Positions 16,228 through 58,643 of a stretch of DNA of 64,000 bases are shown piece after piece. The DNA is from Heterodontus francisci. Lineage: Eukaryota. The translations under genes and the position numbers were made by a program. A model generated the notes under the pieces. That model saw only the letters and a program-made list of their open reading frames with translations. It searched no databases and had not been told where the DNA came from. The first letter of the stretch is position 1. The number at the start of each line of letters is the position of its first letter. The stretch is from contig NC_090395.1 of NCBI RefSeq assembly GCF_036365525.1, forward strand, positions 65,249,326 through 65,313,325, given 5' to 3'.

Positions 16228-16398
16228 TCATTCGGATCTGAAAAGAACTGTAGAATATTCTACAGTTTCCGAGGCACCTTGGCTATTAGCTGTTTTTTGG
16301 GCTTTAAGATCCTGAACATTAATGTAAGTGCTTTCCAAATCAACTCTGGGTACCTTCTTCACAGTGGCGTATGTCACTCCTTCATCTTCCTTCGAAAA
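16228..16398 (-). CDS. Gene A terminal cytoplasmic exon with tyrosine motifs
   Basis: tttgtctcag acceptor. Reads FSKEDEGVTYATVKKVPRVDLESTYINVQDLKAQKTANSQGASETVEYSTVLFRSE*, containing VTYATV, STYINV and VEYSTV. Confidence 0.88.
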   Translation of the reverse strand, partial: FSKEDEGVTYATVKKVPRVDLESTYINVQDLKAQKTANSQGASETVEYSTVLFRSE

Positions 16399-19300
16399 CT
16401 GAGACAAATGGAAAACCGTCAGCACAATACGTCACAACGTTAACCAAACTCAGGTTTTATCATAACCAATAAATATAAAAGCCGTAAATGTTATGTGTTA
16501 TTGTCTACTGTGCCAATCTTTTATATTTACAGAAGCTCAAGTTTCTCTTATTCATTTCTGTGGGCGATTATTCTGTATTTTTTTTTTTAAGGTTGAGAAA
16601 TGTGAATGAAGGACCACGATCCAGAATGGAGAACATCATCAAGGTGGAAAGGAATGGAAGAGAAGCTGAGGTAAGTCAGAAAGTAAAGGAAGAAAGAACT
16701 TGCATAATGTAGTGTCTTTCACGATCTTAGGATGTCCCAAATTGTTTTACAGTTAGCTAAGAACCTCAGACCCCCGACCTTTGTGCCCCCTGACTCTTGC
16801 ACCCACATCTCTCTTGTTTCCCTAGACTCTGGCCCCTCTACCCAAACAATGATGGTTTCCAGCTCTCACACCTTCGACTCACGCCACCTAATTCTCATGT
16901 CATCCATCTCTCCTGTCCCTAGAACTCTGGCTTGCCCACGGCCCCCAGTTATTTTCAGCACACCAGCCAGTCCTGGGTCTCTGCTGGCATTGGACGGCAG
17001 GGGGCCCCAAAATTTAGGGATTGCTTGGGCACTGCCATATGCTGCATTCTGGGAGACTTTGGGTAATCCAGATGCCTTGACTATTCCATGGGAACTGCCC
17101 CAAGCGCTGAGCCTGCTGCCCTTTGTGTGTTCTCTTAGTTTGCTTCAGGTCAGTCTGTGCCAGCCAGTTTTGATGTATGAAGCACGAGTATAGATTCGTT
17201 CTGACTGAGGTTTCCAATTCAGAGTTGTCACCTTGACACGGAACCGGAAACCGAACCACAGTTTAAGAGGATAGGGAGGGAGATCAGGCCTGTTAAAAGT
17301 GGCATCGACTGGGGAGCCTGACTGCACCTGCTGCAGTGCAGGAGAATTCTAGCTGTGGTTTCAGGGTGAATATCAGTAAGTTGCTGGGTCATTTGAGACC
17401 TCGGGGGTGGTCATCCCTGCCCTTTTACGAGTCGCCCCAGGCCCAGATAAGTGTCCCATGCCCATGAATACGAGCCATGGCAAATGGCAGAACCAGCGAA
17501 ATTTCGGCAGTGATGGTGGAATAGCTTGAGGGACAAAAACTGCATACAGGTGGAGGATTCTTTGGGAAGAGGACTTGTGTTTCCTTTAAAGCACACATGA
17601 GGAAGGCAGTGGAAAACCACCTCATGTACTTTTTTCCTAGACATATTGCTAATTTCTCATGGAAGTTAAGAACTGGGAGGCAACTGAAAAGGAAAGCGCA
17701 GGACCGTAAGGCATTGGAAAATGAGCAGACGACCTATTATCACGACTATCAGTGAGTTATAGGATTATAATTAGTCTTGAGTAGGACATTGTGGTGCTAC
17801 ACCTATTAATGCTAGTAGACTATCAATGAGTTATTCTATTACTTTCACTTATGAGGGAATCTGAATGTTACCACTATCTCTATTAGTTATCAGTGCAATT
17901 CCAGTGTGTCGCTTCTAGTTAATGGTGGAATAAAAGTTCCTCTCATCTGGTTTTCCCTTCTGCGAATCGCTGCCCTGCCTTTGATTTCTCCTCTTCCCTG
18001 CCCTATGTTTCCCCTCTCCACCTGCTCATGAATGTCTTCCTGATGCTTAGAAATTTTTGCACAAAAGCTACTGGTTCAAACTCATGAGCAACTACAGGTG
18101 ACCCAACCTTTCTTAGGTAAATGCAAGGACTTTTGCAGATGTCACGCGATTGAACATCATGTGGTCAGAGGCCACATGATCAAGTACCATGTGGTCAGAA
18201 TGTCATGTAATTAAACTTCCAGGATGCATCCAGCCAGAGTTGGCAGCCCTCTTCGCAGCCCTACCATTACCTCTGCATTTGTTGTGAGTTTGACATGGCA
18301 ACATCTTACCTTGCATGTTGCTGCAGGATTTTCCACAGCAGTAATGCTCTGTTCATTTGTGCCTGTAAAGTAAAATTATAATCAAAACATCATTTTATAA
18401 TAAATTTATTGAGATCAAGCATGCAAAAATTCCTGCTGGGTTTTATTTATTTAACCAATATTTGATACGTGTTTTATGGAAAACGTCATGAAGCCAACCT
18501 ATTGTTTGCTTTATAGAGATTTTATTTGTCTGAAAGGTAGAAGTAATAACTTGTATTTATATAATTCCATGTCACATTCTCAGGAGGTCCCAATGGATTA
18601 CAGAATCCAATCGTTGCGAAAGAACTTGATTCATAAATTAGACTGTTCAGGACATTACTAAACCTCTTACAAAACCCTCAAACTATGCATCTTGTATTGG
18701 ATTACATGGGAACAGCAATGTAGAGGAGGATTGGGTAGGGACTTGCTGCACGCCCATGAGTTTGCTTACCCAATCCTTCTTGAACTGCGCGCAGGCAATC
18801 CAATCTAACCAGGCACAGTCATAGGGAACTCCCCTCCGCCCCCCACAGTGTTATCAGCTCCTTACAATGGCCTGGATCTTTCACTTGTAATGATGCTAAA
18901 ACTGTCAGCATCCGCTGTCATTGCTCCATGAAAATGACAGCAACTTCTGCTATACGCACATGCGCAGTTAAACACGTAAATCCAGAAGTTGCTGTCAGTG
19001 ATTCACCATTCCTACACAGGGTGCGCTGTTGAGTCCTTGCAGATGGAAATCAATTAGAAATCACTGATTTGACATTAAATTCCACTTATTATGCTGTTAG
19101 TCTCGCTGTAAAATGCTTGTAAAAGTTAAAGCCTTATTGAATGAGGTGTAACTGAGATTTTTACGGTAGAATAAATTATAATTACTGCTGATCAACTTCT
19201 CTGGCTCTGAAACAACAATTTTGTATTTGTGGAAAGTCAAATTTCTCCATTATTGCTAAAAATTCCACAGATTTCAGCTTCTACCTTATTCCCATTTGCA

Positions 19301-22300
19301 TGTCTGAATCTTTATTTCATTTCTGTAAAATTATTATAAGTGAATGAAAGAAACCTGCTTCATATTTCCTGGTTTGCTGTCTGTGAGAAATCTTCAAATT
19401 GATTGGCTGCTTAGTCTGTTTGATGACATCACTGTTACCAGATGCTGGAGACAGTTGGTGCCAGAATGAAATTAATGTCAGGAAGATGAAATCTGTGCAA
19501 CAGAGATTGCCAGATCTTTGTGGGCAGTTTTCTTCGAGGTCAGGAGCGAGTGCTGTCACTTCACCACTGATTGTAAAATCCAGGCCTATGTTTGAGTTAA
19601 AATGATGTAAAACAAACATAGTTTTCTCACTGGCGACAGCCAGGAGCGTAATGTTATTGGAATTAGCCTGATTGTGTTCCCGTGTGAATACCCCATTCTT
19701 TTTTTCTCCTTTTGCACCTTTTTCTTTTGCTAATTTTCTCCCCCCTTTCCCCTTTTCTTCTGTAGATGTTGACTTTTGCTGGCCTTCATTTCAATCACTA
19801 CCAACCATCTCCTGATACCTTGACCAAGTGTCCATCCTTTGAGAGTGGGCCTGCACAATGATAATTGGCAGGCGATCCAATTTTTGAAGACAACACAGTC
19901 AAGCACTATCTGACCCCTCTAGCCATCCTCAAGTATAGATTAGGGTGCAGAAGATATTCATAAGAATGGTTCCAGGGATGAGGAACTTCAGTTACATTGA
20001 TAGGTTGGAAAAACTAGGTGTGTTCTTCTTGGGGAAGAGATGATTAAGAGGAGATTTGATAGAAGTGTTCAAAATCATGAGGGGTCTGAATGGAGTGGAT
20101 AGGGAGAAACTGCTTCCATTGGACACAGGATCCAGAACCAGAGGACACTGATTTAAGGTGACAGGCAAAAGAAGTGACAGCGACATGAGGAAAAACTTCC
20201 TTACGCGTCGAGCTGTTACGATTTGGAATGCACTACCTGAGAGTGCGATAGAGGCAAATTCAATCGAGGCCTTCAAAAGAGAACTGGATAATTATCTGAA
20301 GAGAAAAAAAAATGCAGGGCTACAGGGAAAGGCAGGGGAGTGAGCTTGGCTGAGTTACTCTTGCAGAGAGCTGTCACAGACATGACGGGCCAAATGGCCT
20401 CCTTCTGTGCTGCAACCATTCTATGATTCTGTGATCAATTGCATTACCTTGATTGGGACAGCTAATTCAACACAGACTGGACTTTAGCTTTCTATGCCTT
20501 AAAACAACTTTGATGAAGCTCATTCTGGCTCCTACTAGCAAATTTGCATCTTCGCTTTTTTGCACTGCTCCCAGTTTAATTGTTGACTCACTGTATGGGG
20601 AATTGCAGAAGTAAGTCAGGGTGCAACCAGTTCTGGCCCGATATGCAAGATCTTAGTTTTCACATACGATTTTTTTGTTCCAACAATGTACTGCAAAATC
20701 TTCAAATATTAAACTGTGTTTCAAAGCACATCAGATATATTGAATTTAATTCTTGATGTATGTTCCTGCCCTGCTGCGATTTGCTTTTTCATTAAAAAAA
20801 ATCTCTCTTACGTGAGCTAGCCCTAGTTTAATAGTTCTTTGCACATATGTAAGCATGAGATGATCAGAAAATGCTGGAAAACTTTTTCTTTTTGTAATAG
20901 ACATTAAATCAAGGTGCCGTCTGCTTAAAAAGAGCCAATGACACTACTTCAAAGAACAGGGGAGTTCGGTGTCATAACCAATATTTATCCCTCAAGTCGC
21001 ATCACCAAAACAGATGGTCTGGTCATTTATCTCATTGCTGTTTGTGGGATCTTGCTGTGTGCAAATTGGGTGCGATGTTTCCTATATTACAAATATTTAA
21101 TTGGCTGTTAAGCGATTCAGGGATGTTCTGAGGTCATAAAAGGCATTATATAAATAAATGTAAGTGCTTCTTCATGGATATTTTAAATACGGGCGCTCAT
21201 GATTTTTACATTTTGTCCTGGATTGAACATACCACTTTTCTTCTGCTGCTTTACTTTTAAATAAAGAATTACAGCAACAATGAGCAGTAGGAGGATGATC
21301 ACCACGACAACTGAAAGAATGACTTGCCACGGAAATGCACTTCCCTTTCTGCAAAATACAATTGAGATAACTGGAACATGAGCCAGAGAGAGAGCTGAGA
21401 CAATTACACATTTCCCTCAAGTCCTGTTCATTCTGGTTCAATCTGATAAAGCATAAATGAGAAATACATTTTAACATTGTTATATCTGTAACTCTAAATG
21501 AAATAAGCAACTACTCTTTCTATTGACATTTAAGAAGACTCTATGGCCTTGGAATTCTAGGGCTGGATTTGGTAGAGCCAGCAGGGTTCCCAATGCTGGT
21601 CTAAAAAGGTGAGAAACCTGCCATTCCGAACCCCCCGCCTGGCTCTATTTAATGTTGCTTGGGCAATTAACAGCCTGGCGCCAGGATCCCCGTCCCTTTA
21701 AAGACAGGAATCCCACCTCCTAAGAGCTGCTGGCCAATCAGACGGCCGGCAGCGCCATTGGGAGCGGTGGCCACTGCCGGTACTACAGGAGGCCCGGGAC
21801 CAGGCCCAGCGCTGGAGACCCAGACCCAAGCTAAGTGAGGCGGGATCACCAGGGCCAGTCCGGCAGGCCCAGTGATGGGGGGAGGGAGGGTGGTCATTGA
21901 GTGTAGGGTGTGCGAGGTGGGTTGTTTTCCACCAGGGGCCCCCTCCAAAGCTCGCAGGGAGGCCTTGTTTTAAAGCGCAACCTCCCCGTGTGGTGGAGAC
22001 CCTCCTGACCTCTGGCTTAATTCAAGCAGCGGTGGGAAGAGGTCCTTAAGTGGATGATAATACGGCTCTTAAGGGCCTCATTTGGCCTCTGGATGGGAAG
22101 GCCGTCATCAGCCTATACCGCCCCCGACTTCATTGCGGTGCGATAGGAAGGCGACAGGCCCTCTTCTCCCTCGCCTCCTGTTGCAATTCTAGGGCCCCCT
22201 GCCTCCTAGCCCATCTCCAGGGTCCATTAAATCCAGCCCATGCTGTGCATAAATTAGTGTGTGAACATTTAATATATTCCTACTAAATTCCTTTCTCTGC

Positions 22301-25300
22301 TATATTAACAGAGGTTTTTCAAAAGTGAATGAACTGTTAAGTAGGAATTTAATACAAATGGGTTAAATGCTTGTGAATTTACTGATAGGCTGGATTCAAG
22401 TAATTAGATTTTGAGATGGTCACAGTCGAGTGCACGTCTTGGCTCAGTTGGTAACATCTCTGAGTTAGAAGGTTGTTAATTTAAGACTCACTATGGACGT
22501 ACCACTGTGACGTCTTAGTGGGGTTAAGAGTGGTGCATACTTGTGTGAATGTCGCAGATCTCATAGCAAAAAGAGAGCAGGCTGCTCGTCTCATGTGCTG
22601 TTCAGCATTCATCCCTCCACAGGATGAGAATTAAACCTCCTTGATGTTTCTGAGGAAGCAACATCCCAAACAGATTGTGGTAAGCCTAGAGCTGAGGTTC
22701 AGGTGTTTTCTGTCTGCTGCCAATGTCAAACTAAGTTTTTATTTTTGACTTTTTGAATAAAGGATGGTTTTTCTACCTCAGGATTTGTGTAGAATCCTAT
22801 TAGCCTTGGCTGCACATAATGGGGGGATTTTATCTGGCGACAGAGGTCTCGACCATCGATAAAGTGCTGGTGAGAGGCCCGCATTGCCTCCTTTGGGGAA
22901 GGCCCGCCAGATTACATGCCAATTAGGCATTTAAGTGGATAGCGGTCGGCCTTCCCCTAGGATTGAGGACCCCGGTGACAGAAGTCCCACTCGCTGAGAG
23001 CTGTCGGCTAATCAGGTGAGCATCTTTTATTCCCAAAAATATACTTTATTCATAAAAATTTGTAAAAAATACATTACAAAACAGTTCAAAACAGCACCAA
23101 GTTGACATTCCAGAAAGTGCAAAGGAAATCAGTTTTCTTCAATACAGGAGTGAGTTGCCTCACAACCCTTCCATTCCATTTTACATGCCACGTACATTTT
23201 ACAGCAAACCCATATCTAGTGTATACAACCCGAGGGGTTTCCCATGGGTCCAGCCCCTTGGTTCACATTGGTGGGAAGACCTTACTTAGTGCTCTTTCCC
23301 CATTGAGCCTTTGCAGCAGCTGCTCCAAGCTTTAGTGCATCCCTCAGCATGTAGTCCTGGACCTTGGAATGTGCCAGGCTGCAACACTTGGGTGTGGACA
23401 ACTCTTTGCGCTGGAAGACCGGCAAGTTTCAGACAGACCAAAGAGCGTCTTTCACTGAATTGATGGTTCTCCAGCAACAGTTGATGTTTATCTCGGTGTG
23501 CGTCCCTGGGAACAGCCCGTAGAATACAGACTCCTGTGTTATGGAGCTGCTTGGGATGAACCTCGACAAAAACCACTGAATCTCTTTCCACACCTGCTTT
23601 GCAAAGGCACATTCCAGAAGGAGGTGGACAACAGTCTCTTCCCCACCACAGCCACCTCGAGGGCAGTTTGCGGAGGGGGTGAGACTTCGGGCATGCAGGA
23701 AGGATCTGACGGGGAGGGCCCTTCTCATCGCCAGCCAAGCTATGTCTTGGTGCTTGTTTGCAAGTTCTGGTGATGAGGCATTCCGCCAAATTGTTTTGGC
23801 AGTCTGCTAGGGGAACCATGCGACAGGATCTACCATCTCCTTTTCCCATAGGGTCTTGACATTCCGTGCAGACCACTGCCTGATGGATTGGTGGTCAAAG
23901 GCATTTTTTCGCAGAAACTTTCCCACGAAGGATAGGTGGTACATCACAGTCCAACTGGATGGAGCATTCCGTGGCAATGTGACCAGACCCATCCTTCGCA
24001 ACACCAGGGACAGATAGAACAGATAGCATGTAGTGACACTTGGTGTTTGCGTACTGGGGCTCTAAGCACAGCTTGATGCAGCCACACACGAAGGTGGTCA
24101 TCAGGATGAGGGCGGCGTCGGGTACATTTTCCAGAGGTTTGAACATCATGTCCCTCCGGACCCCGTCCATTTTGCATCTCCAGATAAAGCGGAAGAAGGC
24201 TCGGGTGACCGCCATGGCGCAGGAGTGGGGTGTGGGCCAGATCTGCGCCACATACAGCAACAACGTGAGCGCCTCGCACCTGATGACCAGGTTCCTACCC
24301 ACAATGGAGAGAGATCGCTGCTCCCACATGCTCAGTTTATGGTGTACCCTGGCTACTCGCTCCTTCCAGGTTTTGGTGCACATCCCAGGCGTTCCGCACT
24401 ATATCCTCAGCACCTTAAGGTAGTCTGACCTGACGGTGAAGGGGACAAAGGAACGGTCAGCCCAGTTCCCAAAGAACATGGCCTCACTCTTGCCGTGGTT
24501 AACTTTGGCTCCCAAGGCCAGTTCAAACTGGTTGCAGATGCTCATCAGTCTGTGAACGGACAGCGGATCAGAACAGAAGACGGCGACGTCGTCCATGTAC
24601 AGGGAGGCTTTACCTGAGTGCCTCCGCTGCCTGGATTGTCACCCCTCTTATGCCCGTATCCTTCCTAATGGACTCAGCAAAAGGTTCGATACAGCAAATA
24701 AACAAGACAGGGGAGAGAGGACAGCCCTGTCTGACTCCAGAATTGATCGGGAAACTTTCTGATTCCCAGCCATTGATTGAGAATGCGCTACTGATGTTTG
24801 TATAGAACAGTTTGATCCAATTGCAGATTCCCTCCCCAAACCCCATTTTGGAGAGCAGGTACATCATGTATGTGTGTGATATCCTGTCAAAAGTCCCCTC
24901 CTGGTCCAAGCTGATGAGTCAGGTGTGCACTCTCCTGTCCCGTATATAGATGATCGTATCCCTGAGTAGCGCGAGACTATCAGAGATCTTCCTGCCGGGT
25001 ACAGTACAGGTCTGGTCAGGGTGAATTACCAACTCCAGAGCAGACTTGACCCGACTGGCGATGACTTTGGACAAAATCTTGTAGTCAACATTAAGCAGTG
25101 AGATGGGCCGCCAATTTCTGATTTCCGCCCTCTCCCCCTTTCGCTTGTAGTTGAGGGTGATGATGTCTTTCCTCGTGGATTCTGACATGCTGCCGGCCTG
25201 AAGCATACTCTTGTATACTTCCAGCAGGTCTGGGCCGATCCAGTCCTACAGAGCTGAATACAACTCAACCGGTAAGCTGTCACTTCTGGGAGTTTTACTC

Positions 25301-28300
25301 GTCTCGAAAGTACTGATGGCGTTTGTCAGCTCATCCATAGTTAACAGTTTGTCCAGCCCCTCCCACATGCTGTCATCCAAGACCTCCCTGATAGATGACC
25401 GGAAGGACTGGGAGGCCGTGCTGTCCGTGAGCTTCACGTCATACAGCCCAGCAGAAAAGGATTTGTTGATCCTTAGTATGTCGGACTGCGATGACGTAAC
25501 TGTGACATCCTCTTCCTTCAGGCTGCTGATCACAGAGCTCTCACTGTGTACCTTTTGGAAGAAGAAACGCAAGCACATCTCATCCCGCTCAACAGAGCGG
25601 ACTCTGGACCGGAAGATGATCTTGGATTTGGGGCGCGCTGGGCCCATCACAGCTTCCAGTGCCCCGGAGCTGGGGGCTTTATCTTCCAGCTTCTTTGAGT
25701 TCTCCCTCTTCTTTTGCAGGTGCCGTCATTCTGGCCATTCCTCGTCCAATCAGGAGCAGCTGCTGTAGTCTGTCTCATTCGGTAGCCTCCTCTTGCCACT
25801 GGTTTGGGTGGTGGCCTCTCTTTAACTGAACAGGGCCATTGTGGAGGTGGTAGATGCTGCCAGTAGAGCACTCACTGAAGGCACTGGAACCAAGCCACAG
25901 GTAAGTCAGGACGAAGAGTTTCGCCAGGGAGCGGGGGATCGGCAGCAAGGGCAAGACGTGGCTGTCAGCGGAGTCCCGACCACCTTCCCAATGCTGGGTC
26001 CCCTGTTCAGGCACTAAGTTCCTTTAACAAAGGAGCCCCTGGTCCCCAGGAACTGGAAGGCAACCCACACAGGATTGGAAGGCATGCTCCCGATGCGACG
26101 ACAGGACCGCCTGCCGCTGGGCGAATATCAGCAATGGTGGGATGAGGCCCTTGTTTGGGAATTAATTGTCCACTTAAGGGCCTCAATTGGTGGCAGGGTG
26201 GGAAGTCGGTTCACAGGCCTTCCTGCCCCGGACTTAATTTGGGTGGAGGCGGGTAGGTGGTGGGATCCCCACCTGCCACCAACTCGCCCGATTATACACT
26301 CTCCCCACCTCCAAACCTGACACTCTTCCCACCCAGAATGGAGAGGTTGGGAATTTCCCGATCAGTGATCCCTGGAAACTCTGAGTTATTTACAGAAATA
26401 TGGTAACGATGCAGAATATTGATTTCAACTTTTCAGACACTAACCTGTTTGTTCCAGTGCTGTGAAAAGTGGTGAGAGCTTCAGTAGTTCCTGTTGTCCA
26501 GGTGGTTGGGCCTATTATTGACCTGGAGACAACGGGAAGAATTTTAAATTGACAACGCGGCTCTTTGCGGCAGCACCGGAGGTCGTGCTGTCGCCCCTTT
26601 AGTGAAATACAGCCGGGTGACCGTGATCATGCAGCAGCCAGCCAATTAAGGATGGGGTGGGAGGGCCCACTGCAATCAAGGACCTGAGGTGGGAAAGGGA
26701 CACCAATGCTGCCATCATCTCTCACAACGGCACGTGCTGGCACCAGAAATAAAGGGTTGCCAGCCCTGCACTCACTCCTGGATGGAAAGAAAGCCTTCCC
26801 GAGTGCCCTCTGTTCCTCGGACATTGTCTGCTGCCTATGCTGCATAATAAACAAGGTGCTGATTGCGAGCCTGCACTGGCCATGGCTGAAGGAAGACCCT
26901 GGGTGGCCCCACGGATTAGCGATGCCTCCCTGCAGGATCTCCTCCAGGCTGCAAGGAAAAGGCGGGAGGTCCTCTGTCTCAGGGACAAGAGGAGGAGACC
27001 TGCCCACCTGACCAAGCAAGCCTGGACAGAGATTATGGAGGAAGTCAGCAGCCGTGGAGTCACCCCCAGGGCATGGCTCCAGTGCAGGAATTGGGGCAAT
27101 GACCTCATCCAGGCTAACTGCAAACACTTTGGACCCTTTGGGCATTGCATGTGTCTAAACTGAGAGGGAGCGTTTGGTGGAAAGGCAGTGGCCACCCAGT
27201 CATGTTGATTGGGGAAAGGCAGCAGGACCTGTTGCCTGTGGCTGGGCTGCATCTCGATTAGGGGCGCACGTCAGTCATTGTTAAATCCTACACAGTCCCT
27301 CGGTAGGGGCCGCATGTTGGAGGTGTATGTGTGCTCCCATCATGGCCCACTGGACTATCACCATCAGAGGTATGGGGCTTTTTGCCACTGGGAGACTAAT
27401 TTTGTTCACTTTTCTGTCTGCAGGAGAAGACAGCCCCAATAGGAAGGAACATGCCAGCGCTGAACTCCCTTATCTCCATGTCCTCGCCCTGATGTAGGAG
27501 GAAGCCATGGAACAGGCTGGGCACAAGGTGACCAGACCAGAGCTGGGGGACAGCCGGCCATCTCAGAGAAGGAGAAGGGAGCCTCAGAGGTGCACCATCA
27601 CATCATTCCCACCAACAGGTGAGGCAACAGTGGACGATGGAGAAGCCTATCCAGGCCCTGGGTGCTGCACTCTCTCTGCCAATCACATGACTGGCTCCCT
27701 CCATTGCAAGGTTCAGAGGCAGACCTGCACACCATCACTTTGTCTGTGAGCTCTATGCATTGTTTGCAAGGAGAGAGGGGGATGAGGCACCTGAAGTCTC
27801 CACCAGACACATGTCCCTCTCAGGTCAGCAGGGAGTTACAAGCGTCCTTTATAAAGGGGGAAGTGGAAGAGCAGCTTCCTCCTGAATCAAGGGTCTCCTC
27901 TCAGGGTTTTCCTGGTGTGAGCAGTAGCTCCAAAGCCCCTCTGCTAGTGATGCCAGCGCCAGATTGTGAGGCAGGGGCACCGATCCAAGACGGTGAGTGA
28001 GCATCGACTGAGCTGCAGGAGGCACTGAGTGTTCTTGGGCCCCCCAGGTTGAGATAGTCAGAGGACGACCACATAGGTCATCCCAAGCCAGGAGGCAGTA
28101 AGGCCAGCTACCAGCCTCTGCCTCAGCCTCAGCTGCCAGTGCAGGGGGCAGAGCCACATTGGAGAACCCAGAAAAGAATTAAAAAGAGCATCAAAATGCA
28201 CTTCGGGGATCATGGGTGAAGATGCAGTTGAGGTGGGTAGTTGTGCATTTGGTGTGACGCTGAATAAAGAAATGATGTTCACTCACTTTCTGTGATGTCC

Positions 28301-37671: not shown

Positions 37672-37754
37672 TCTGGACTGTTTCTAGCAGGTGAATTAAC
37701 CGTGCTCAGACATCTGAGCTTTGCTTTCTTTGAGTCGGTTGGTTTTTGTAGGTC

Positions 37755-37762
37755 ACTTCCTC
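37755..37762 (-). promoter_or_regulatory. PU.1/Ets motif GAGGAAGT ~85 bp upstream of the leader ATG (copies at 58727-58734, and AAGGAAGT at 62677-62684)
   Basis: Consensus match retained in the diverged paralogous promoter; typical of leukocyte receptor promoters. Confidence 0.45.
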
Positions 37763-44189: not shown

Positions 44190-44765
44190 TTAGGGCTCGA
44201 GGAAGAGCATCTCAACTACCGACTAGGCACGCTACAGCCTGTTGGACTGAACATTGAGTTCAATAATTTCAGAGCATGACAGCCCCCCATATTACTTTCA
44301 TTTTTAGTTGTTTTTTTCTTTTTTTCTTTTTTACATTTTTTACAATCTTTTTTTGCATTTATTTCATTTCATGTTAGTTTGTTCAGTTTGCTTACCCACT
44401 GTTGTTTTCACGTTTGCACTCGCTGCTGTTCAATATTCAGTCGGTTAATACCTTATCTGTACGAATGCTTTGTCTTTCAACACACCATTAACATATTGTT
44501 TGCCTTTGCTCCATGACCTTTTGGTCAGCTATGTGGCATTGTCCAATCTACACCTTCTCCTTTGTTATCTCTTGCCCCACCCCCACCTCACTTGCTTATA
44601 ACCTGTGACATTTCTAATATTTGTCAGTTCCGAAGAAGGGTCACTGACCCGAAACGTTAACTCTGCTTCTCTTTCCACAGATGCTGCCAGACCTGCTGAA
44701 TGGTTCCAGCATTTCTTGTTCTTATTTCAGATTTCCAGCATCTGCAGTATTTAGGTTTTATTTTA
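44190..44765 (+). mobile_element. Penelope 3' fragment (short termini also at ~34205-34340 and ~55885-56010)
   Basis: Homologous to 8495-9058; hammerhead core mutated to CCGAAGA at 44626-44662. Confidence 0.85.
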
Positions 44766-46071
44766 CTGTTTGAAACCCTGGTTGCTGCATTTGTTCTGAG
44801 ATGCTGGAAAAACCAGCCGGATAAATTCTTGATGCTGCTTGAACAAATTGCTCCAGAAAAGGATCCCAGTGACAGCCGTTTACGCGTATTTGGGCCGCCA
44901 GACCAAAAAGGGACAATGGGCATCTTTCCATATTTTCTCTTTTTTTCTTCAGGAATCAGCAAGTATTTGGCCGAATTATTCTTTTTTGTCTTTTTTTTTG
45001 TAACAGAGCTGTAAAGAAAAAAGTTATTTTTCGGTGTGTGTGGTGTGTCTAAGGTAAAAAGGGAACTTTCATATTTCACACTGGGTGTTCATGCTTCATT
45101 ACTGATTAAGACTTGTTTTGTAATAAACTTAAAATTTTGTTGCTTTTTAAAGAAACCTAGTCGGTGAATTTTATTCTGGGGTAAAGAGTCTATGATTGAA
45201 CCTATCGGTAACTGGGTAAACATTTAATTATGAGTTGTGACCTGTGGAGAAATGGAACTAGAAAAGACAATGCACTCCTCCCACCTCAGCTGGAACAAGT
45301 GCAAGACAGGAGAAGTGACTTCCAAGAAGTTGGCAATCAAATATCAGGCAGTGATAGCATTCGCTGCGAAGGAGTGCTGTGAGTAGCAACCTCTCACCAG
45401 GCCATGGCTGCAGCCCGTCAGTTTTAATGATCAAAGGCTTCCCAGCCTGTCAGTTTCACTGAAGAAGCAATCCCTGCTGTGCACTTGCCTCGGTGACCCT
45501 GACGAGTTCCACACAGCTCAAGACGTAGGTCCACTGGCGGTTAAAGCCAGAATCCTTGGTTAAAAGAGTACTTAATTGCCTATTTGAATATTTAAGTGAC
45601 TTACCTGACAGTTGCACGTGGGTTCCCCTCTCTACCTTAACGATACCTGGGTGAAACCCGGAAGAAGGCAGGATGATGTCGGGATCCTGACCTGACGTGA
45701 CTTTTAGGGGATTTAACTCTCCAGACACACCCAAACCTGCCTCCACTTCCCTGTAAAAACTGCCCCAATCATTTGGTGATAGTTCCAAACCATAATGCGA
45801 CACCTTTTTAACAAGTTAGTGCTGGTTAATGAAAAGTGGGAATCAATTATCTGTTTGAATCCCATCAGTTGTGAATATTTCAAAAAAATAACTGCTCCCT
45901 AACATAAAAATTCAGCAAATCGTAACTCCTCTTTTTATTATCACAGAAATAATTCACACAATTTCTACAGACCTTACAAAGCATTTCATATGGTAATAAA
46001 ATACAAAAACGACAATATTGAAAAATAACTACTGAAAGAAAGTGAAAATATTCTGGACATTCATGTATGAT

Positions 46072-46154
46072 TTAGTGAATTTTCTGTCTTGCCTTCAAAT
46101 GCAGCTCTGATCCATTTGTATTCTCTGTTTCCATATAACCCATCATTTGCTGGC
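46072..46154 (-). CDS. Gene B putative terminal exon (GQQMMGYMETENTNGSELHLKARQKIH*)
   Basis: ttttccag acceptor, phase 1 fits the TM exon, minus-strand AATAAA at 45934-45939. No homology support. Confidence 0.55.
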
Positions 46155-49100: not shown

Positions 49101-52100
49101 AATGGGCAGATCCTAACCCTTCAATGTCGATGTTTTCTTATGCAGGTAAAGCTGAATGACATGGGAGAGGGGCTGGAGAGACTGGGGGACAGCCGGCCAT
49201 CTCAGAGAAGGAGAAGGGAGCCTCAGAGGTGCACCATCACATCATTCCCACCAACAGGTGAGGCAACAGTGGACAATGGAGGAGCATATCCAGGCCCTGG
49301 GTGCTGCACTCTCTCTGCCAATCACATGACTGGCTCCCTCCATTGCAAGGTTCAGAGGCAGACCTGCACACCATCACTTTGTCTGTGAGCTCTATGAATT
49401 GGTGGCAAGGAGAGAGGGGGATGAGGCATCTGAAGTCTCCACCGGACACATGTCCCTCTCAGGTCAGCAGGGAAGTACAAGCGTGCTTCATAAAGGGGGA
49501 AGGGAAGGAGCAGCTTCCTCCTGAATCAAGGGTCTCCTCTCAGGGTTTTCCTGGTGTGGGCAGTAGCTCCAAAGCCCCTCTGCTAGTGATGCCAGCGCCA
49601 GATTGTGAGGCAGGGGCACCGAGCCAAGACGATGAGTGAGCATCGCCTGAGGTACAAGGGTCATCTCGGATGACAGAGGTGGTCCCTGCACCTGTGCAGG
49701 AGGCTCTCAGTGTTCTGGGGCCCCCCCAGGCTTGAGGTAGCCAGAGGACGACCACATAGGGCATCCCAAACCAGGAGGCAGCAAGGCCAGCTACCAGCCT
49801 GCCTCAGCCTCAGCTGCCAGTGCAGGGGGCAGAACCACATTGGAGAACCCAGAAAAGTATTAAAAAGAGCATCAAAATGCACTTAGGGGATCATGGGTGA
49901 AGATGCAGTTGAGGTGGGTAGTTGTGCATTTTGTGTGACGCTGAATAAAGAAATGATGTTCACTCACTTTCTGTGATGTCCTTTGGGAACTCATTTAAAC
50001 CCTTCCTCCCAAGGAGCTGGTATTGAGGGACCAAGCCCCGAGTGCTCATCCTTTGGCTTTGTCACTATGTGAAGTGCACCTGGGTGCTGCAGTGCGGAAG
50101 GAAGGAGGCGACAACAGGGCTGTTTAAAGGTAAGGCTTTATCGTTGTGGTTCTAGAAGGTGGTAAGGCTCAAAGGAAATGTGAATATAAGGGCGTCTCAT
50201 GCCTCCCTTACGCGTATCTCATGGCACGTGTTCTGCTCTGCTTGGGACCGTTTATCTGGCACTGCTTGGGCAACATCCTCCTCCCCATCCTTGTCATCAG
50301 AAGAGGCATCACACTCCTCAATGGTCATTGTCTCCGCCCCTCAGTAGTGCCAGGTTGTGCAGTGCACAGCAAACCAACTCAATATGCGTAACCCTTGCCA
50401 GGGCATACTAAAGGGCTCCACGGCATCGATCTCGGCACCAATGGCCTGCTCAATTGTTGCTCAGGTTAACACATTGCAAGTGTACCTCTCCTCTGCATCT
50501 GTGTGTAGGTTTCTCTCAGGCATCAGGAGCCATGTTCTCAGTGGACAGGCCTGGTCTCCAAGGACCTATCCCTGAAGGGATGTGGGGCATGGAAAAGGTT
50601 GGGCACCTGTGATTGACTCTTAGTCTGTAGGCATCATGGCTGCTTCCTGGGAGTTGTGCACACACCTGCAAGATCTGTTTGAGGTGGTTACACTCCATAT
50701 GTTCATTGAGTGAGTGGAAGCCCTTCCCATAATGAAGGGAGCAGGCTGGTCAGTGGAAGCCTTGATGGTCACATGCATGCTTTGATGACCCACTGCACCT
50801 GGGGGAATCCAGCGATGGCCCTGAATCCTATAGCCTGTTTGGATCGTTGCGGAAGCACACATAGTCGCCAGCCTTCCTGAATATGGCATTAGTGACCTTC
50901 CTTATGCAGCGATATGCCGCGGACTGGGAGATTCCACGCGTATCTCCAGTAGATCCCCGGAATGATGCAGTGGCGTAGATGTTCAGTGCTACGGTGACCT
51001 TCAGTGCCAAAGACATCAGGTGCCCACCAAGTCCCATCGGGCTCAGATCATCCTGCATCATGGCACACAGAGCATTGAAGGCCTCCCTGGAGAGACAGAG
51101 TCTTCAAAAACACTGCCTCTTGGACATCTGCAAGTAGTTGATTCTCGGCCGGTATACCCTCTCTGAAGGGTAGCTTCTTCTGCCTGCAGAAAGGAGCTGG
51201 TGTGCCCTCTGTATCCTTCTACAAACTCCAGAGCCCGAGGGAGGACCTCCTGTGTACCCCCAGACTGTGGTATGCCCCTCCCAGTTCATGCGCCTCCCTC
51301 CCCTTCTGCTGCTCCTCCTCCTCAGTAGTGGTCTCAAAGCCAGGGTCTCAAAGCCAGGGTGAATGAGGCCCATGAGAGTTTGCTTCTCCCTAAGTACAAG
51401 ACCTTCAAGGTAGATGGACCCCCTCCCCCACCCTCACATCCCCTTACTTGTGACCTCCGATGATGTGGCACTGCCCATATGGTACACTCGTATGGCTTCC
51501 TGCAGTGCTGGCACCTTGGCCCCCTCAGCCTTCACTACCAAGCAGTGCTGCCTCACTTGATTGCTTCCTTGTGATAGGTATAAAAGTCTGAATTAAGTAG
51601 AATTTGGAAATAGTGTATTATGCCTTTTAGAGTTAGAGATTGAATGGATGGTCAGTTTTTAGAATTCACTGCCATTCCCCTTTAAGAAGGTAGAGTTAGA
51701 AAATGTCAAGGTCACTGTTATGAAGCAGAAACAAGTTGGGAAATCCATTTGTGTCTCTGTTGTCAGGACCTTGGAAGATAAACACACACATTGAAATATC
51801 CTGTCAGTAAGAGGTAGCAACAGACTTAATTGGTTTGTGGGTTTGTGCAGACAGGTTGGCTCCAGAGGTTGCTTTGAGGTGCCATGGAAAGGGCAATTAT
51901 AGATAATGAAACAATAAATGGAATGTAGTCACAGGAATAAGAAAGGTTAAGTAAACACAATTATAAACATTTTGACCAGATAAATGCTCACATCTTCAAC
52001 AGCAAAGGAAGTTCATTAAGTGGAAATGCTAATTAAAGATACGGATTTTAAAAGGAAGACAGGAAGGTCACATCTATGCTAAAAGTCAGATGACACTTCA

Positions 52101-55100
52101 GAAACAGTATAAACATGAGAGGTTTTTGAAGCCAAATTTAGAAATGTTGAATCCTCAAACAACGCTATGCAATGAAGGGACATTTAAGGTAAAAAGTTTA
52201 CTTTACATTTTTATGGATATTCTGGATATTCTAAGATATTTTTGCTGTAACATTAGTAAGGTTAAACTTTTGGATTCTATGTTAGAAATAAGATTATGTG
52301 TTACATCTTTTAGTCATATTTGATATTGTTATATACTTATCCACTGAAGTGTATTGCATGTTAAATTCTTTAATAAATCTATAAAAGTCAATAAATCATC
52401 TCACGTAGCATTCTGTATGCAACCACAAAGAACCCCCTTTCTGTATCTCTTTAAGTGGAGAGATATGTATTGAAGAGAATTCTCAGACCCTTATAATATC
52501 TGGGATATTTATGACTTAGCTTATTTTAATAATTACGGCTATCTGAAAGATGGTAATATTCTCTGTTGGTTTTCTTTATTTGAGTGAAAACTAGTACAAT
52601 TCTTTGGAGCCAAATAAGTGTCTCTGAGAATTTGTCTGGTTTGAACTTGATTAAAGGAGATTCAAAGGGATGTACTCCTGATTTGATTTAGTCCCTATTA
52701 GGGATTAAAGTCATAAATCACTTCATCCCAGTGACGCCAACACTGAGCTCCTGTATCCTTGTCACCTCCTTTCACCAGTCGAGGCCCGGAAGCCCTGTGA
52801 TTTCCATCCATCATCAGATAAATGCACAATGGAGAACAATATTGCTGTGTATTGGGCTCTCATGTACCTTAATTGCCTTCCCGCCTTGTGGATGTATGAC
52901 GTCCGCCCTCCATGTTGATTGCCAACAGTAAAATCCAGAAGGGATGTCACGATGTCGAACTTCCTGTCTGATGCCTCCTGTCCCTATTTTATGCCCCCCC
53001 GCCCCCCACCTCTGTTCCCCTCAAACGGCCCCTTAAAATACAGCCCAATATTGCTGTAAGAGACTGGGATTGATTTTATGCAAACCGACTCCTGTCTTCC
53101 CATTTCCTGAACTTTTCAACACCTACTGCTAGGGCCCCAGAAAAAATTGGAACGCTGAACATGTTGGTGAAGTAAAGCCCACTTCCCGTGGGCTCTGGAA
53201 TATTTGCTCTTCGACTGTAAAAGAAGAGGAAGATCAGCCCAGGGAAATATAAAGGATATGAGTAGGACATCTCAACATAGCAGTGTGGAAAAGAAAGGAG
53301 AAAAACATGAATTCTATCAGTCTAATTTAGTTAATCTCTGTAAAGAAAAGGTGGGTTTTATCAGAAACCCTTGAAATCTGCTTTAGTGCCAAAGCTAAAA
53401 AGAATAGAATCAATTGTAAGTTTCACCACAGATTACAAAGGGTCTGGAATCTGTATAATGTATTTGTCCCTCCAGTTCAGCATTTTAAAAAGGACTCAGT
53501 TAGTTGAAGATTACTTTCATACTTATGACACAATATTGAATTCAACTTTTAAGAGACTAACCTGGTTGTTCCAGTTCTGTGAAAAGCAGTGGTGAGAGCT
53601 GTAGTAACAGAAGCCTCAGTAGTTTCTGTCACCTTGGTGGTTGGGCCCATTGTTGACCTCTGTACTGGGCCTATAACAGATGAACTTGCTGATCATTTTA
53701 TCCCGAAAAGCACTTTTCATATACAGTTTACTCCTCTTAATTGAGTCATATAATGATCTAATCAATCATTTTTAAAAGGAATTTCCCACTTTGTATTGTT
53801 TGTGTTGCTTAATTCAAATGATCAGATCATTCCTGCTTTTTTAGGGAAACATTTGACTGAATTAGCAGCACTGGACTGTGGCACAAAAGGATGAAATCAG
53901 AGACACCGACAACAATATACATGGCTAGTGAATTTCAGCTTGGTGGCTCCTAGCTGAATATCTGGTGCTGGTTTTCCTCCTCCTGTGTGAGTTGGCAGAG
54001 GTTCTGATCACAGAGCGATCGATTGGCATTGGGGAAGTGACACGATAACAACGGGTTGTATTTTACCAGCCCACTGGAGACAGGCTGGGAGGTGGGAGGC
54101 TGCAGAAGACGGCAGCGAAAGGTGTCAGGAGGGGAGTCCATGTTTCCTCGCTGCCATGGGATATTACCAGTGACGGGAAGCTCAACGGTGCTGCCACCAG
54201 CTGAGCAGAGGCGGACGGCCAATTAAACCAATTAGTTGCTCAATTAAAGGCCACTTCCCATTCTGGCAGCCTTCCCGGGGTGGGGGTCCTCCTGTACGGC
54301 CACTCCCTGGTCCATGAGGGATCCCTGGCGCCCCCAAGGCTATGTTGCCATCGCTGGAGGGTGCAGCCCTATGACCGGGTCTGTGTGCCTGAACCCAGCT
54401 TGGTAAAACAAAACCTATCTTGCCTTTGAGGGTGCCTCAGGATGGAGGTTCCCTATCCTCCTTCCTGCATCCTCAGCAGTGGCCACTTCTATCGGTGGTG
54501 CTGCTGAGACTGCTGAGCTATCGGCCCTCTGATTGGGCTGGCAGCTTGGCGAGGCGGCCCCCATCCTCAATTGGACAGCAATGACGGCCGCAGCCTCTTA
54601 ATTGCCCACTGCTGCTAAAATGCCACCCAGTGTCCCTCTGCTCACCCACGTGGGTTCAGGTCTTGCTTTCGGCCCTGGCGACAGGACAACCCTTTCGATG
54701 AGAAAATTCCGGCTGTGAACAGAACAATTGCCAGCGAAATCCTTTCAGTCGGAACATGTTTTTCCAGTCTGTTTCTCTTGCCTCCTTCCTGACGGAGTGG
54801 AAGGATCTTGCTCTGGAAATCCAGTGTCCCCATGAGCCGGGTACCCCAGTAAATGGGCGTCCACCCCTTTGGTGCAAATGAACCTGCCCCTGGGATTAGC
54901 ACAGGGTTACTGTCAGAGCAAACTGGGGAGAATTTCTGGTTTTAAATGTTTCAATTTGGACAGAATAAATGAAATAGAAATACATTAGTCATCTTACCTT
55001 CAGAAACTTCTAATTTTACAGACATCTTGATATTTTGTCCAAGTGTTGGCATTTCTATCACACACCAATAATATCCTTCATCATTCTTCGTGAGGTTATC

Positions 55101-58100
55101 CATGGTTACTGAAAATATCCTTTGTGTTTTGTTATCAGTCAGTGAGAATCTTCCTTTTTTTGGTTTATCAGTAGAAACCACCACCTCAGAAGATAAGTAA
55201 TAATAACCTTCACGCCATTGTTTAACATGGTCCTTGTAATTCCGATCATACTGACAGTCCACAGTGACTGATCCTCCCAATTCACCATGAACCTTCTCGG
55301 GTCCAGTTAATTGAAATGAACCTGTTGGCATATTAATGATGAAAGATTATTAACAACTCTGGCAGGATCAACAAAAACAGTATTTCATCAAATAAACACT
55401 GCTGTTCCTGTTGTTATGGCAATCTTCATTGTAATTACAGATCGAATCCCATTTTTAATATCAAATTCTTTCTGCTGATTCTCATGTCACCAGCACTGTT
55501 ACTGAAATTATTGCATATACTCTGGTTTTGATCCTGATTTTCCTCAATATGGAGTCCTGTGATTTCCTGTTGTGAGCTGGTTGTGGAGCCAGATTCCCCA
55601 CAATCACTGCATTCTGACAAAATCATTCCTGTCATCATTGTTGATTTATATTCTTTATTTACACAGATCATCGCTATTCAGACAAACTAAAAATCTTTCA
55701 GAAAAACAATTTCTTTCATTCTTTCTGACAGTTTCTCTCAGTCTGCCCATTTCTAAGCCCAGTTATTTTATTTCACTTTCTACAGTTGAGTTATCTGGGC
55801 CTAAACTGCTTTTTCTGATCATAGAAACAGTGAAACATTTGGAACAGGTGTGGGCCACTCACCCGCCTTGGCTCCATATCCCTCGATGAAAGGTTACAGA
55901 CCTGAAACGTTAACTCTGTTTCTCTCTCCACAGATGCTGCCTGACCTGCTGAGTATTTCCAGGACTTTCTGTTTATAAATCAGATTTTCAGCATCTGCAG
56001 TATTTTGCTTTAATTTCTTGCACGAACTGTTAGGACCAGACAGTTCGGGCAATATACTCTGTCTGTCTTCTGGAGAAAAAGACTAGATTTATGGAAGTGG
56101 TGGGTTGATATGTGATGGAGGATGGGAGTGTGGGTGTAGCTACACCAGATGGATTGCAGTGGTTCAAGATGGCAGCTCACTACCACCGTCTCAAGGGCAA
56201 TTAGGGGTGGGCATCAAATGCTGGCACTGCCAGCAAAACCCATATCCCAAGAAATGAATTTAAAAGGAAAACACATCAGGAATATTAGCATGCACTGACT
56301 TACTACAGGATATATTTGCTGACCAATCAGGAGCAAGAACAATAGCTAATACTGACCAATCACAGAATACAATAGCCAACCAATCATCAGCAAGAACAAT
56401 AACATGTACCCACCAATCACAGAGACACTCAGCCTGACCAATCATCAACAAGATCCCGCCCATCCTCCATCACCAAAAAACCCACCTTTTCGACAGATTC
56501 AGACTTTTCTCCAGAAGATGGGCAAAGTATGTTGCCTGAAATGTTCTTCTAAGTGATTGTCTTCAAGGAAAGATTGTCTTTTTTCTGAGCAATTCACATG
56601 GTGTAAATCTTCAATTGTCTTACTGAAGATGCAGTTCTTGTTCATATTACAAATTGTTGTCTTTGAAGTATTTTGTGAAGTTGCTGATTCAAATATTGTT
56701 TAACAACAATAATTTGCATTTATACAGCGCATTTAACACAATAAAACGTCCAAGGTGCTTCACAGGAGCATTATAAAGCAAAATAAGATACCGACACACA
56801 TAAGGAAATATTAAGTCAGTTGACCAAAAGTTTGGTCAAAGAGGTAGGTTTTAAGGAGTGTCTTAAAGGAGGCAAGCAAAGTAGAGAGGCAGAGAGGTGT
56901 AGGGAGGGTTTTCCAGAGCTTTGGGCCTCGGCAACTGAAGCTGCAGCCACCAATTGTGGAGCAATTAAAATCAGGTTTGTTCAAGAGGCCAGAATTAGAG
57001 GAGCACTGATATCTCGGAGGATTGTGTGGCTGGATATGATTACAGAGATAGGGAGGGGTGAGGCCAGGGAGGGATTTGAAAACAAGGATGAGAATTTTAA
57101 AATCAAGTGTTGCTTGACAGGGAGCCAGTGTAGGTCAGCAAGCACAGGGATGATAGGTGCATGGGGTCTGTCGTAGTCACATAGGATGTCATTTGTGACT
57201 TTGATAAGAACTGTTTCGGTACTGTGGCAAGGGTGGAAACATAGAAACATGGGAAAATAGGAGCAGGAGTAGGCCATTCGGCCTGTCGAGCCTGCTCCAC
57301 CATTCATTGCAATCATGGCTGATCATCCAAACTCAGTAACCTGTTCCTGTTTTCTCCCCGTATCCCTTGAAACCTGACAGGAAGGATTCAAACATGGAAT
57401 TCCAGGAAAGATGGGAAATGGATTTGGGAGGCGACAACACCTTCAAGGACTTTGGAGAGGAAAAGAATTCTGGATGGAACCCTACGTGAATTGGGTGCAA
57501 GTAGAGGGACCTAATTTCTGTGGGGGTCTGATATCCAACACAGCAGCAGGTTTAATGGGACGCTGTACCAATATTTAACATATCCAATAATGAGCTGCTA
57601 AACTACCCAAACCCCACCCCTCCGAGGACTTCACAGGAGCCAGAAAGCTGGCAGAGCCAGGCTGAGAGCACCCACTGTATGGGCACTCCTGAGGTAGACA
57701 TGACATGAAAATTGTTCCTCTTTTCATGCAGGATAGCAATGAGAAATGTAGTATGAGGACAGGAAGATTAAGATAGTTTCTTTGTGACACTGTTGGTATG
57801 TTAACACACACACAGCATTGCAAAATAAGGACGTGAGCTGTGCAGATTGGTTCACAACAGAGCATTTGGGAAATAGTTATAGAGGGGCTGGTTGTAGAGC
57901 TCACCATGAAAAGCCACAGGTCTATCAGCTCTGAGCTGGTACTGAGAAATATGGTCAAATAATTCCTAGTAAACTCATAAGTCACCTTACAAATGGTTTT
58001 AAAAAAAAATGATTTATTTGAGTTTCGGAGGTTGGGTAAAACACAATATGAAGAAACACTTGAGGCACCCATTCAATTTCTGTTCTGATGCAATTCATTT

Positions 58101-58643
58101 TTGCTGAATTGAAGTCACAGATTGTGTTTTTCTTTCTCCAAATCTACTTCAGTTCTAAACATTAGTATTTCACACAGTTTGTCTTCGAAGAGACAAATGT
58201 GTTCGAGGTTCACCATTTTTCTTTGCAGTCTTCAGAAGGAACTCTATGTGAAGCGCCTTGGATCATTTTAACAAGTTGCATTATGTCGCATCGTTAACTT
58301 AGTGTTCTAAATAAAAAGGAAATGCAGTTAGATTCCTGCCATTGATAAGGAGCTAGAGTTTCAGGAAGGACAGAGCTGCAACAGGAAAGCACAGAAAGAA
58401 GAAAAGGTGATTGAAGATACAGGAGAAGCAGATGAATATCATAAAAATGAACTGATAAGACCAAGTGTGGTTCACCTTTCGCTCACCACAACAGAATTAC
58501 GGGCGACAGAGTAAGTAGAAGTTTCTGGTCTTCACCAGCTCTGATGACAAAAGTGCTTTTTCATAACATTAAGGAACAGGATTTTAAAAAAGAGACTTAC
58601 TTGATGCAGACATAAGAATCAAAAGAGCAATTAATTCCATCAT
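46072..58643 (-). CDS. Gene B: activating-type CD300/pIgR-like receptor, ~247 aa; exons 58601-58643, 54998-55321, 53562-53670, 47856-47933, 47471-47577, 46072-46154
   Basis: GT-AG introns with phases 1,1,2,2,1 give a 744-nt ORF; Arg in the TM; short tail without ITIMs. Confidence 0.8.
47471..47577 (-). CDS. Gene B transmembrane exon with charged Arg
   Basis: cttgtttaatcag acceptor and gtataa donor; reads RDDKLKSHRIWPIFRWLLVGALVICTVSVTCFAEGP; phase 2 to 1 as in the gene A TM exon. Confidence 0.8.
47856..47933 (-). CDS. Gene B stalk exon 2
   Basis: Identical to 26445-26522. Confidence 0.65.
47945..53046. mobile_element. Duplicated PIF/Harbinger relic
   Basis: Same insertion site and ORF fragments as 26534-31369 (48221-48574 Myb/SANT; 50828-51061 transposase). 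Confidence 0.8.
53562..53670 (-). CDS. Gene B stalk exon 1 (GPVQRSTMGPTT...)
   Basis: Two substitutions relative to gene A; splice sites intact. Confidence 0.82.
54998..55321 (-). CDS. Gene B IgV exon lacking the second disulfide (KQWREGYYYLSS)
   Basis: Five substitutions relative to gene A; canonical Ig Cys/Trp and splice sites intact. Confidence 0.92.
58601..58643 (-). CDS. Gene B leader exon (identical to gene A)
   Basis: MMELIALLILMSAS followed by gtaagt. Confidence 0.85.

Follow-up and report, generated by a model that had tools for sequence, protein, structure and literature searches.

Evidence for an ancient pair of inhibitory and activating CD300-like receptors in the horn shark, with only the ectodomain identity being young

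Two neighbouring genes on the minus strand of a 64,000-nt window of the horn shark genome (Heterodontus francisci, NC_090395.1; the window is the whole stretch that was analysed, and all positions below are window coordinates) encode receptors with almost the same extracellular part and unrelated back ends. We consider it likely that they are an expressed pair of inhibitory and activating CD300-like receptors with a single immunoglobulin V-type (IgV) domain, of the type called 'MDIR' in skate, and that the pair is an old one whose ectodomain has been recopied. Judged from the sequences of its relatives, the pair appears to be ancient, with an age of hundreds of millions of years, and only the identity of the ectodomains would be young. 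Gene A, the inhibitory form, has an uncharged transmembrane (TM) segment and a tail with immunoreceptor tyrosine-based inhibitory motifs (ITIMs), and gene B, the activating form, has an arginine (Arg) in its TM segment and a short tail. A first-pass annotation had described these unrelated back ends, which were confirmed, and had counted seven differing codons in leader, IgV and stalk, a number that proved exact. The paired-receptor design that it proposed holds at the sequence level and at the transcript level.

Two receptor genes and one ectodomain

About 8.5 kb separate the stop codon of B from the ATG of A, and the window contains no runs of N. The exons of gene A are the following:

37629-37671, minus strand: leader exon, ATG at 37671, phase 1 donor; same letters as the B leader (0 differences)
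33322-33645, minus strand: IgV exon, V-set of CD300/pIgR type, with Cys37-Cys101 plus a second pair, Cys51/Cys59
31885-31993, minus strand: stalk exon 1, Thr/Ser/Pro-rich
26445-26522, minus strand: stalk exon 2, optional, included in the 297-aa isoform; 0 differences to B
21233-21348, minus strand: TM exon, uncharged helix (residues 166-197 in the AlphaFold model, AF2), then a KVKQQKK stop-transfer
18310-18362, minus strand: small cytoplasmic exon, 53 nt
16228-16398, minus strand: last coding exon with VTYATV, STYINV and VEYSTV; stop at 16230-16228

The exons of gene B are:

62552-62591, minus strand: older alternative leader exon, MELIALLILTFVS, with an intact GT donor; ATG at 62591
58601-58643, minus strand: leader exon, A-type; ATG at 58643
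54998-55321, minus strand: IgV exon, five replacements relative to A; both cysteines of the second disulfide gone (R51, S59)
53562-53670, minus strand: stalk exon 1, two differences from A; loose ends joined to 47577 and 47933 read its 3' end
47856-47933, minus strand: stalk exon 2, alternative; joint 47577/47856 in RNA run X1
47471-47577, minus strand: TM exon, …IWPIFRWLLVG…, with Arg as the sixth residue of the predicted helix
45928-46162, minus strand: last exon, six residues, tail …VFQASK; stop at 46145-46143, AATAAA at 45939

The tail of A contains three motifs that fit the ITIM consensus. VTYATV and VEYSTV are kept in relatives at the motif level; STYINV fits an ITIM in the horn shark, and in relatives it is the YxN that is conserved. 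The A protein is 271 aa long without stalk exon 2 (XP_067913486 in RefSeq) and 297 aa long with it (XP_067913484). In B, the protein has 200-226 aa, the tail is made of 10 residues without motifs, and the reading frame is intact through all exons and isoforms. A search with the open frame of the B IgV exon retrieved a 200-aa RefSeq protein of H. francisci with 100% identity, which is exactly the chain of leader, B IgV, B stalk exon 1, Arg-TM exon and VFQASK.

RefSeq models four isoforms of B (XP_067913487 to XP_067913490). Isoform X2 uses the alternative first exon (62591-62552), which adds to the coordinates given in the first-pass annotation. In isoform X3, the TM exon is left out; the last exon is then translated in a different frame, which adds a 30-aa tail ending in …QKIH (46072-46162, minus strand) and makes the product soluble. 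A short form found in Chiloscyllium ends in …LHLKMGQKIH, and activating tails of Scyliorhinus contain SPGQQM. Both frames of the last exon of B seem to be conserved.

The two genes share a large direct repeat in which 26244-38435 corresponds to 47655-59407, a segmental duplication of ~12 kb (detected by self-BLAST and aligned with MAFFT) that includes, for both genes, the promoter and the exons for leader, CD300/pIgR-type IgV and stalk. Each copy contains four exons with AG/GT borders and compatible phases: the leader, the IgV, a stalk exon rich in Thr, Ser and Pro, and a further stalk exon of 78 nt. In the MAFFT alignment, the A and B copies differ by 203 substitutions in ~11.5 kb and by three indels of 704, 228 and 42 nt. 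The TM exon of B is placed 78 bp beyond the boundary of the duplication. A third copy, partial and 840 bp long, is found at 62000-62841 and is 89% identical to the copies of A and of B.

At the protein level, the ectodomains are 95-96% identical. Seven of the 184 shared codons differ (five in the IgV, two in stalk exon 1, none in the leader or in stalk exon 2), and all seven differences are nonsynonymous: C51R, K52E, C59S, M92T, V109G, L126Q and T128S, written from A to B. Between the back ends, no DNA or protein similarity was detectable. Neither a relic of an Arg-TM exon below A nor a relic of an ITIM exon below B was found using blastn (word size 7) and tblastn.

Both IgV exons match the Pfam V-set (E=1e-16 for A, 2e-15 for B). 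Residues C37, D95, G97, Y99 and C101 are invariant in the IgV alignment, and the canonical B-F disulfide and the D.G.Y.C motif are present. When PDB was searched with phmmer, pIgR (2e-39, multi-domain) and CD300f/CLM-1 (5e-22) were retrieved. The AF2 model of the A protein has a predicted local distance difference test score (pLDDT) above 90 across the IgV. Its best Foldseek matches are mouse CD300lf (E=7e-14, TM-score 0.89, root-mean-square deviation 1.8 Å, 40% identity), human CD300f and CD300a, followed by domain D1 of pIgR. The CD300-like assignment of the first-pass annotation holds, the closest solved sequences and folds being CD300f/CD300lf, CD300a and pIgR domains. The cysteines of the C-C' disulfide, C51 and C59 in A, are R51 and S59 in B; several intact relatives among the sharks likewise lack one or both of them.

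To examine expression, RNA contigs from four runs were matched to 44800-48300. Contig depth was high in exons and low in introns, and the contigs contain intron-less joints with GT..AG ends on the strand of the genes; hence, we regard them as transcripts. The joint 46162/47471, which links the TM exon of B to the last exon, was present in all four runs, and the joint 47577/47856, between stalk exon 2 and the TM exon of B, was present in run X1. Loose ends at 47580 (runs X2 and X3) and at 47937 (runs X1-X3) read the last 24-27 nt of stalk exon 1, indicating that this exon is spliced both to the TM exon directly and to stalk exon 2. The link between stalk exon 1 and the TM exon rests on the letters of these loose ends. 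For A, the specific RNA evidence is the stalk exon 2-to-TM junction only, detected in run X3 as a loose end at 47856 that reads the start of the A TM exon. Both partners are therefore expressed: for B, splice junctions of three kinds were seen, in up to four runs, and for A one junction was seen.

Of the predicted junctions, those joining stalk exon 1 to TM, stalk exon 2 to TM and TM to tail in B, and stalk exon 2 to TM in A, were recovered, while the B IgV and its TM exon were not seen on one molecule. That link is drawn because of the gene order, with the TM exon upstream of the A promoter, and because of the RefSeq protein models, which coincide exactly with the exon chains, including the third-leader and TM-skipped isoforms. 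An unspliced contig (record 6 of run X1) spans the duplication boundary from 47552 to 47867 with zero mismatches; therefore, the assembly junction at the B boundary is real. Two intervals, 46789-46905 and 45034-45384, showed very high contig depth with many differing loose ends. They look like abundant short repeats transcribed elsewhere rather than parts of gene B.

Relatives of the two ends and history of the ectodomain

The core of the Arg-TM module, W-x3-R-W-[LIV], is present in activating forms of Scyliorhinus canicula, Chiloscyllium plagiosum and the stingray Hemitrygon akajei. The modules are identical to one another at 11-17 of 25 residues (44-68%), with W, R and W invariant. A profile search of 1.8 billion representatives added Arg-TM segments in Mustelus, Mobula, Narcine and the skate Leucoraja, whose 'pIgR-like' protein carries the same motif. 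Two sturgeons (Acipenser) have a similar TM motif, W-x3-R-W-I-L-F, on 'pIgR-like' proteins (P0051, P0120); 'pIgR-like' is the name that NCBI gives to the ray and sturgeon relatives. Counterparts of the ITIM tail were found in Scyliorhinus, Chiloscyllium/Hemiscyllium, Mustelus, Hemitrygon and Pristiophorus, and the order ITIM–YxN–ITIM is kept in the inhibitory forms of seven elasmobranch species, the horn shark counted. The 'young receptor pair' of the first-pass annotation is at odds with these counterparts of both ends in other sharks and in rays, and youth appears to be confined to the ectodomain identity.

In a maximum-likelihood tree, the IgV domains group by species or lineage and not by signalling type. 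The activating and inhibitory IgVs of S. canicula are sisters (99/95), with the inhibitory form of S. torazame outside; the activating and inhibitory proteins of Hemitrygon pair domain by domain; and those of Chiloscyllium/Hemiscyllium group within one family. The A and B IgVs of the horn shark are mutual nearest neighbours by a wide margin. Forcing the activating IgVs into a monophyletic group costs 309 log-likelihood (lnL) units, with p=6e-45 in the approximately unbiased test (p-AU). Grouping of IgVs by species over signalling ends that are conserved and inherited independently is the signature of concerted ectodomain evolution.

A related layout was noticed in the S. canicula activating gene (P0005, P0015), which has two isoforms. 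Between these, stalk, TM and tail differ at a few residues only, and the leader and IgV cassettes are very different. One of the cassettes is close to the neighbouring inhibitory gene, and the arrangement resembles the two leaders of B.

Divergence between the A and B copies is stepped, and the upstream end of the B copy retains traces of how it was placed:

28856-38435 (B ~50530-59407), no strand: young stratum of A/B homology, ~1.0% divergence, with promoter, leader, IgV and stalk exon 1
26244-28855 (B 47655 to ~50529), no strand: older stratum of A/B homology, 4.4% divergence, with stalk exon 2
59408-59447, no strand: upstream junction of the B cassette, stuttered TATATTGG units, then 27 nt equal to A intron 1 (37060-37086)
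59448-61996, minus strand: long interspersed nuclear element (LINE) with endonuclease and reverse transcriptase; insertion in B's old intron 1

A likelihood change-point was located at A 28855 (B ~50529), with 2ΔlnL=111 and a Fisher p=5e-26. It falls inside one GC-rich block and not at its edge (115/2601 vs 11/1044, p=5e-8). Base composition as the cause of the 4.4% stratum was rejected, as the same step is found at non-CpG sites and the step lies inside the GC-rich block.

The B cassette starts 764 bp upstream of the ATG. Its upstream junction consists of two TATATTGG units followed by the 27 nt of A intron 1, with TTGG microhomology, and this junction (59407) is not a homologous exchange. 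Beyond the LINE lies the remainder of the old intron 1, leader and promoter of B. The older leader sits in the 840-bp block of promoter, leader and intron 1 at 62000-62841, which is 11% diverged, and no further IgV exon that could serve it was found in the window.

Two divergence strata imply more than one copying event. The simplest history that would fit the sequences has three steps. An old activating gene with its own leader would have existed at the outset. A cassette derived from A, reaching from 764 bp upstream of the ATG through stalk exon 2, would then have replaced the old gene from intron 1 to the intron before the TM exon; it would have been pasted by a non-homologous, microhomology-type junction and would have left the old promoter and leader in place as a second first exon of B. 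Later, conversion would have homogenised the 5' 9.6 kb (promoter, IgV and stalk exon 1) again. Under this scheme, the ectodomain would have been homogenised repeatedly between the members of an old pair. At an assumed rate of 0.5-1e-9 substitutions per site per year per lineage, the strata would correspond roughly to 5-10 million years (1.0%) and 20-45 million years (4.4%).

The GC-rich block (0.53-0.56) is coding-like, lies in the intron between stalk exons 1 and 2 of both genes (26600-29900 and 47950-51000), and carries long open frames on either strand. A Harbinger-type transposon was considered for it and dropped, as no Pfam match was obtained at E<=0.001, and the block was left unnamed. 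Further repeats were observed in the window. LINE fragments with reverse transcriptase are found at 23286-25700 (minus strand), in the intron between stalk exon 2 and TM of A, at 41029-43284 (minus strand), between the genes, and at 610-2416; between 40186-43614 and 610-2416, the identity is 88%. An inverted LINE-like pair (60211-61302 and 62913-63998, 65% identical) flanks the old promoter/leader block of B, and the strong, opposite GC skew across 60-64 kb reflects this pair. Other repeats are an inverted one of ~1.06 kb with 87% identity (6045-7102 and 7759-8821) and a dispersed one of 570 bp (8496-9059 and 44195-44761).

Coding differences, signalling model and alternative explanations

The excess of nonsynonymous differences is not significant: with 426 nonsynonymous and 126 synonymous sites, the probability that all seven changes are nonsynonymous is P=0.16. 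The cluster of three substitutions in 26 nt around the cysteine pair has P=0.002 as a single window and ~0.05 after scanning, and no claim of positive selection is made. Comparison with outgroup residues places C51R, K52E and C59S on the B lineage and the changes at L126 and T128 on the A lineage; the A branch in the IgV tree has zero length. The same R and S are found at the cysteine pair of the S. canicula activating form. The loss of both disulfide partners through three changes in 26 nt is suggestive; the C-C' bond is, however, labile in this group, since inhibitory relatives lack the second cysteine too.

When the differences were placed on the model of A, C51R and K52E were found at the end of strand C, C59S at the opening of C', and V109G in the FG loop; M92T lies alone at the opposite pole. 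In CD300 and TIM structures, the ligand face is made up of the CC' and FG loops. Four of the five IgV differences would thus map to the ligand face in the model. Stalk exon 2 shows no differences inside the 4.4% stratum, where 3.4 were expected (P=0.03), which may be taken as weak evidence of constraint on both genes.

The motifs suggest how the pair might work. The IgV of A would bind a ligand. SH2 phosphatases would be attracted by the ITIM tyrosines of A once these are phosphorylated, thereby damping the cell, and Grb2 would be a fitting partner for the conserved YxN. B would signal only through an adaptor with an acidic TM segment and an ITAM (immunoreceptor tyrosine-based activation motif), which would pair with the TM arginine. 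In established receptors, a TM arginine pairs with a TM aspartate of the ITAM adaptor. The FcR-gamma/CD3-zeta pattern has an arginine close to the outer leaflet, the DAP12 pattern a central lysine, and the arginine of B lies in the outer third of the helix. A and B would share a ligand, the soluble isoform of B could be a decoy, and B would be expressed from two promoters.

Several points weigh against an old, expressed pair with a recopied ectodomain. The runs were labelled RNA by guess only, although their intron-less GT..AG joints show it, and all four come from one sample. The contigs cover stalk, TM and tail, and do not carry the B IgV variant and the TM exon on one molecule. The second IgV disulfide is lost in B, which could equally mean relaxed constraint, and the nonsynonymous divergence (dN) of 7/426 (1.6%) is compatible with neutrality when compared with the 1.0-1.8% of noncoding DNA (Fisher p=0.2). 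The likeness of the sturgeon TM segments concerns a short motif and could be convergence. The strata could in principle stem from ectopic exchange of the intronic repeat with other copies in the genome. Finally, the FcR gamma chain is stated to be absent from cartilaginous fish in reviews (PMC4016189, PMC5742104).

Part of these points feed an alternative that we regard as unlikely, namely that B is not an activating receptor but a decaying or non-signalling copy, be it a soluble or membrane decoy or a chimera drifting to a pseudogene. In its favour, dN is close to the noncoding rate with a synonymous divergence (dS) of 0, and the IgV shows no significant constraint; both cysteines of the second disulfide are lost; a TM-skipped soluble isoform is annotated, and its tail is conserved in Chiloscyllium. 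The reported lack of the FcR gamma chain (PMC5742104) and the repeated pseudogenisation of CD300C, the primate activating partner (PMC12447643), point in the same direction. However, the frame of B is intact in every exon and isoform, splicing is correct, and in at least one run the TM exon is covered by contigs to a high depth. The TM module, including its arginine, is conserved across elasmobranchs, and stalk exon 2 is unchanged within the more diverged stratum. Moreover, the loss of one or both cysteines is also seen in intact relatives, inhibitory ones too.

A truly young pair, in which one recent tandem duplication of the inhibitory gene captured a fortuitous Arg exon in the horn-shark lineage, would account for a divergence of 1-2% across 12 kb and for unrelated back ends, neither of which has left a trace downstream of the other gene. 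We find this very improbable: the same TM exon occurs on CD300-like domains in three other shark genera, in several rays and in sturgeon, an older promoter and leader, 89% identical and annotated as a first exon, persists upstream of B, and the two strata need more than one event. An assembly artefact, with two haplotypes or a collapsed repeat set side by side as a false duplication, deserves hardly any credence. The 98% identity of the copies is a level known between haplotigs, but the two copies are bordered on either side by unique sequences that differ between them, the indels and the stepwise profile of divergence separate the copies, and there are no gaps nearby. Splice junctions specific for A and for B were both seen, and RefSeq models both genes. 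Misassembly, which the first-pass annotation had named as fatal to its proposal, is also contradicted by the contig that crosses the B boundary without mismatch.

Building on the old pair with a recopied ectodomain, a wider proposal can be made, which we put forward tentatively and hold to be somewhat less probable than its negation. The Arg-TM module would predate the split of cartilaginous and bony fish, and it would have been matched to its neighbour by repeated transplants of the promoter and ectodomain, with at least three layers in the horn shark and parallel events in catshark and stingray. After each transplant, the activating copy would diverge on its ligand face, and the C-C' disulfide would have been lost in parallel in two orders of sharks. 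If true, a long-running decoy cycle would be legible in the divergence strata of introns.

Comparison with known receptor pairs and significance

Mammalian CD300A and CD300C resemble the shark pair in having a single V-set IgV of pIgR/CD300 type and adjacent genes with an ITIM tail and with a charged TM and short tail. In the activating CD300 members of mammals, the charged residue is a centrally placed Lys or Glu; B, by contrast, has an Arg in the helix's outer third, and it lacks the C-C' disulfide. Another difference is that the shark copy takes its promoter along and sits in intron 1, thus giving B two promoters and two leaders. In primates, the ectodomain likeness of CD300A/C has been reported to be upheld by gene conversion, which is a further resemblance (PMC12447643).

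Ectodomain homogenisation as a recurrent source of pairing is, to our knowledge, not part of the description of skate MDIRs. These receptors form a multigene family of cartilaginous fish with activating (positively charged TM) and inhibitory (ITIM) members, whose Ig domains resemble CD300, TREM/TLT and pIgR (PMC3031540). One to six domains were described in MDIRs, in contrast to the one IgV found here. The first-pass annotation had left open that the kind of system might be undescribed; this is not the case, since NCBI models both genes and activating/inhibitory CD300-like MDIR genes of skate have been described (Cannon et al. 2006, as cited in PMC3031540).

Siglec-5/14, SIRP, PILR, KIR and CEACAM1/3 also place a near-same ligand-binding domain on opposite ends, with concerted evolution of the ectodomain, for which CEACAMs offer examples (PMC5112662, PMC7042247). 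They belong, however, to other Ig families, with other adaptors, and none is from cartilaginous fish. With pIgR the likeness is that the IgV aligns with every pIgR domain; unlike pIgR, the pair has a single domain and ITIM or Arg-TM ends. The A/B pair is not a pIgR.

Literature searches on CD300/CMRF35 in sharks and elasmobranchs yielded no paper on this pair, and none was found that deals with such pairs of cartilaginous fish evolving in concert. The kind of system is known, and both genes exist as NCBI models; the proposed layered history of transplants and the retained old leader are what most deserves notice. Reviews up to 2026 consider that pIgR-related receptors and the FcR gamma chain are lacking in cartilaginous fish (PMC4016189, PMC5742104, PMC13337447). 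Contrary to these reviews, a pIgR/CD300-type domain and the adaptor-dependent type of TM segment are present in this group, which sharpens the question of the adaptor used by the shark Arg-TM receptor.

Paired receptors are usually discussed for mammals, and the horn shark offers the full paired design, with transcripts. The stepped divergence, together with the retained old leader, affords an unusually clear view of how such a pair is renewed. The conserved ends in rays and the TM motif in sturgeon suggest that the design, and the homogenisation of ectodomains with it, is likely to be as old as the jawed vertebrates.

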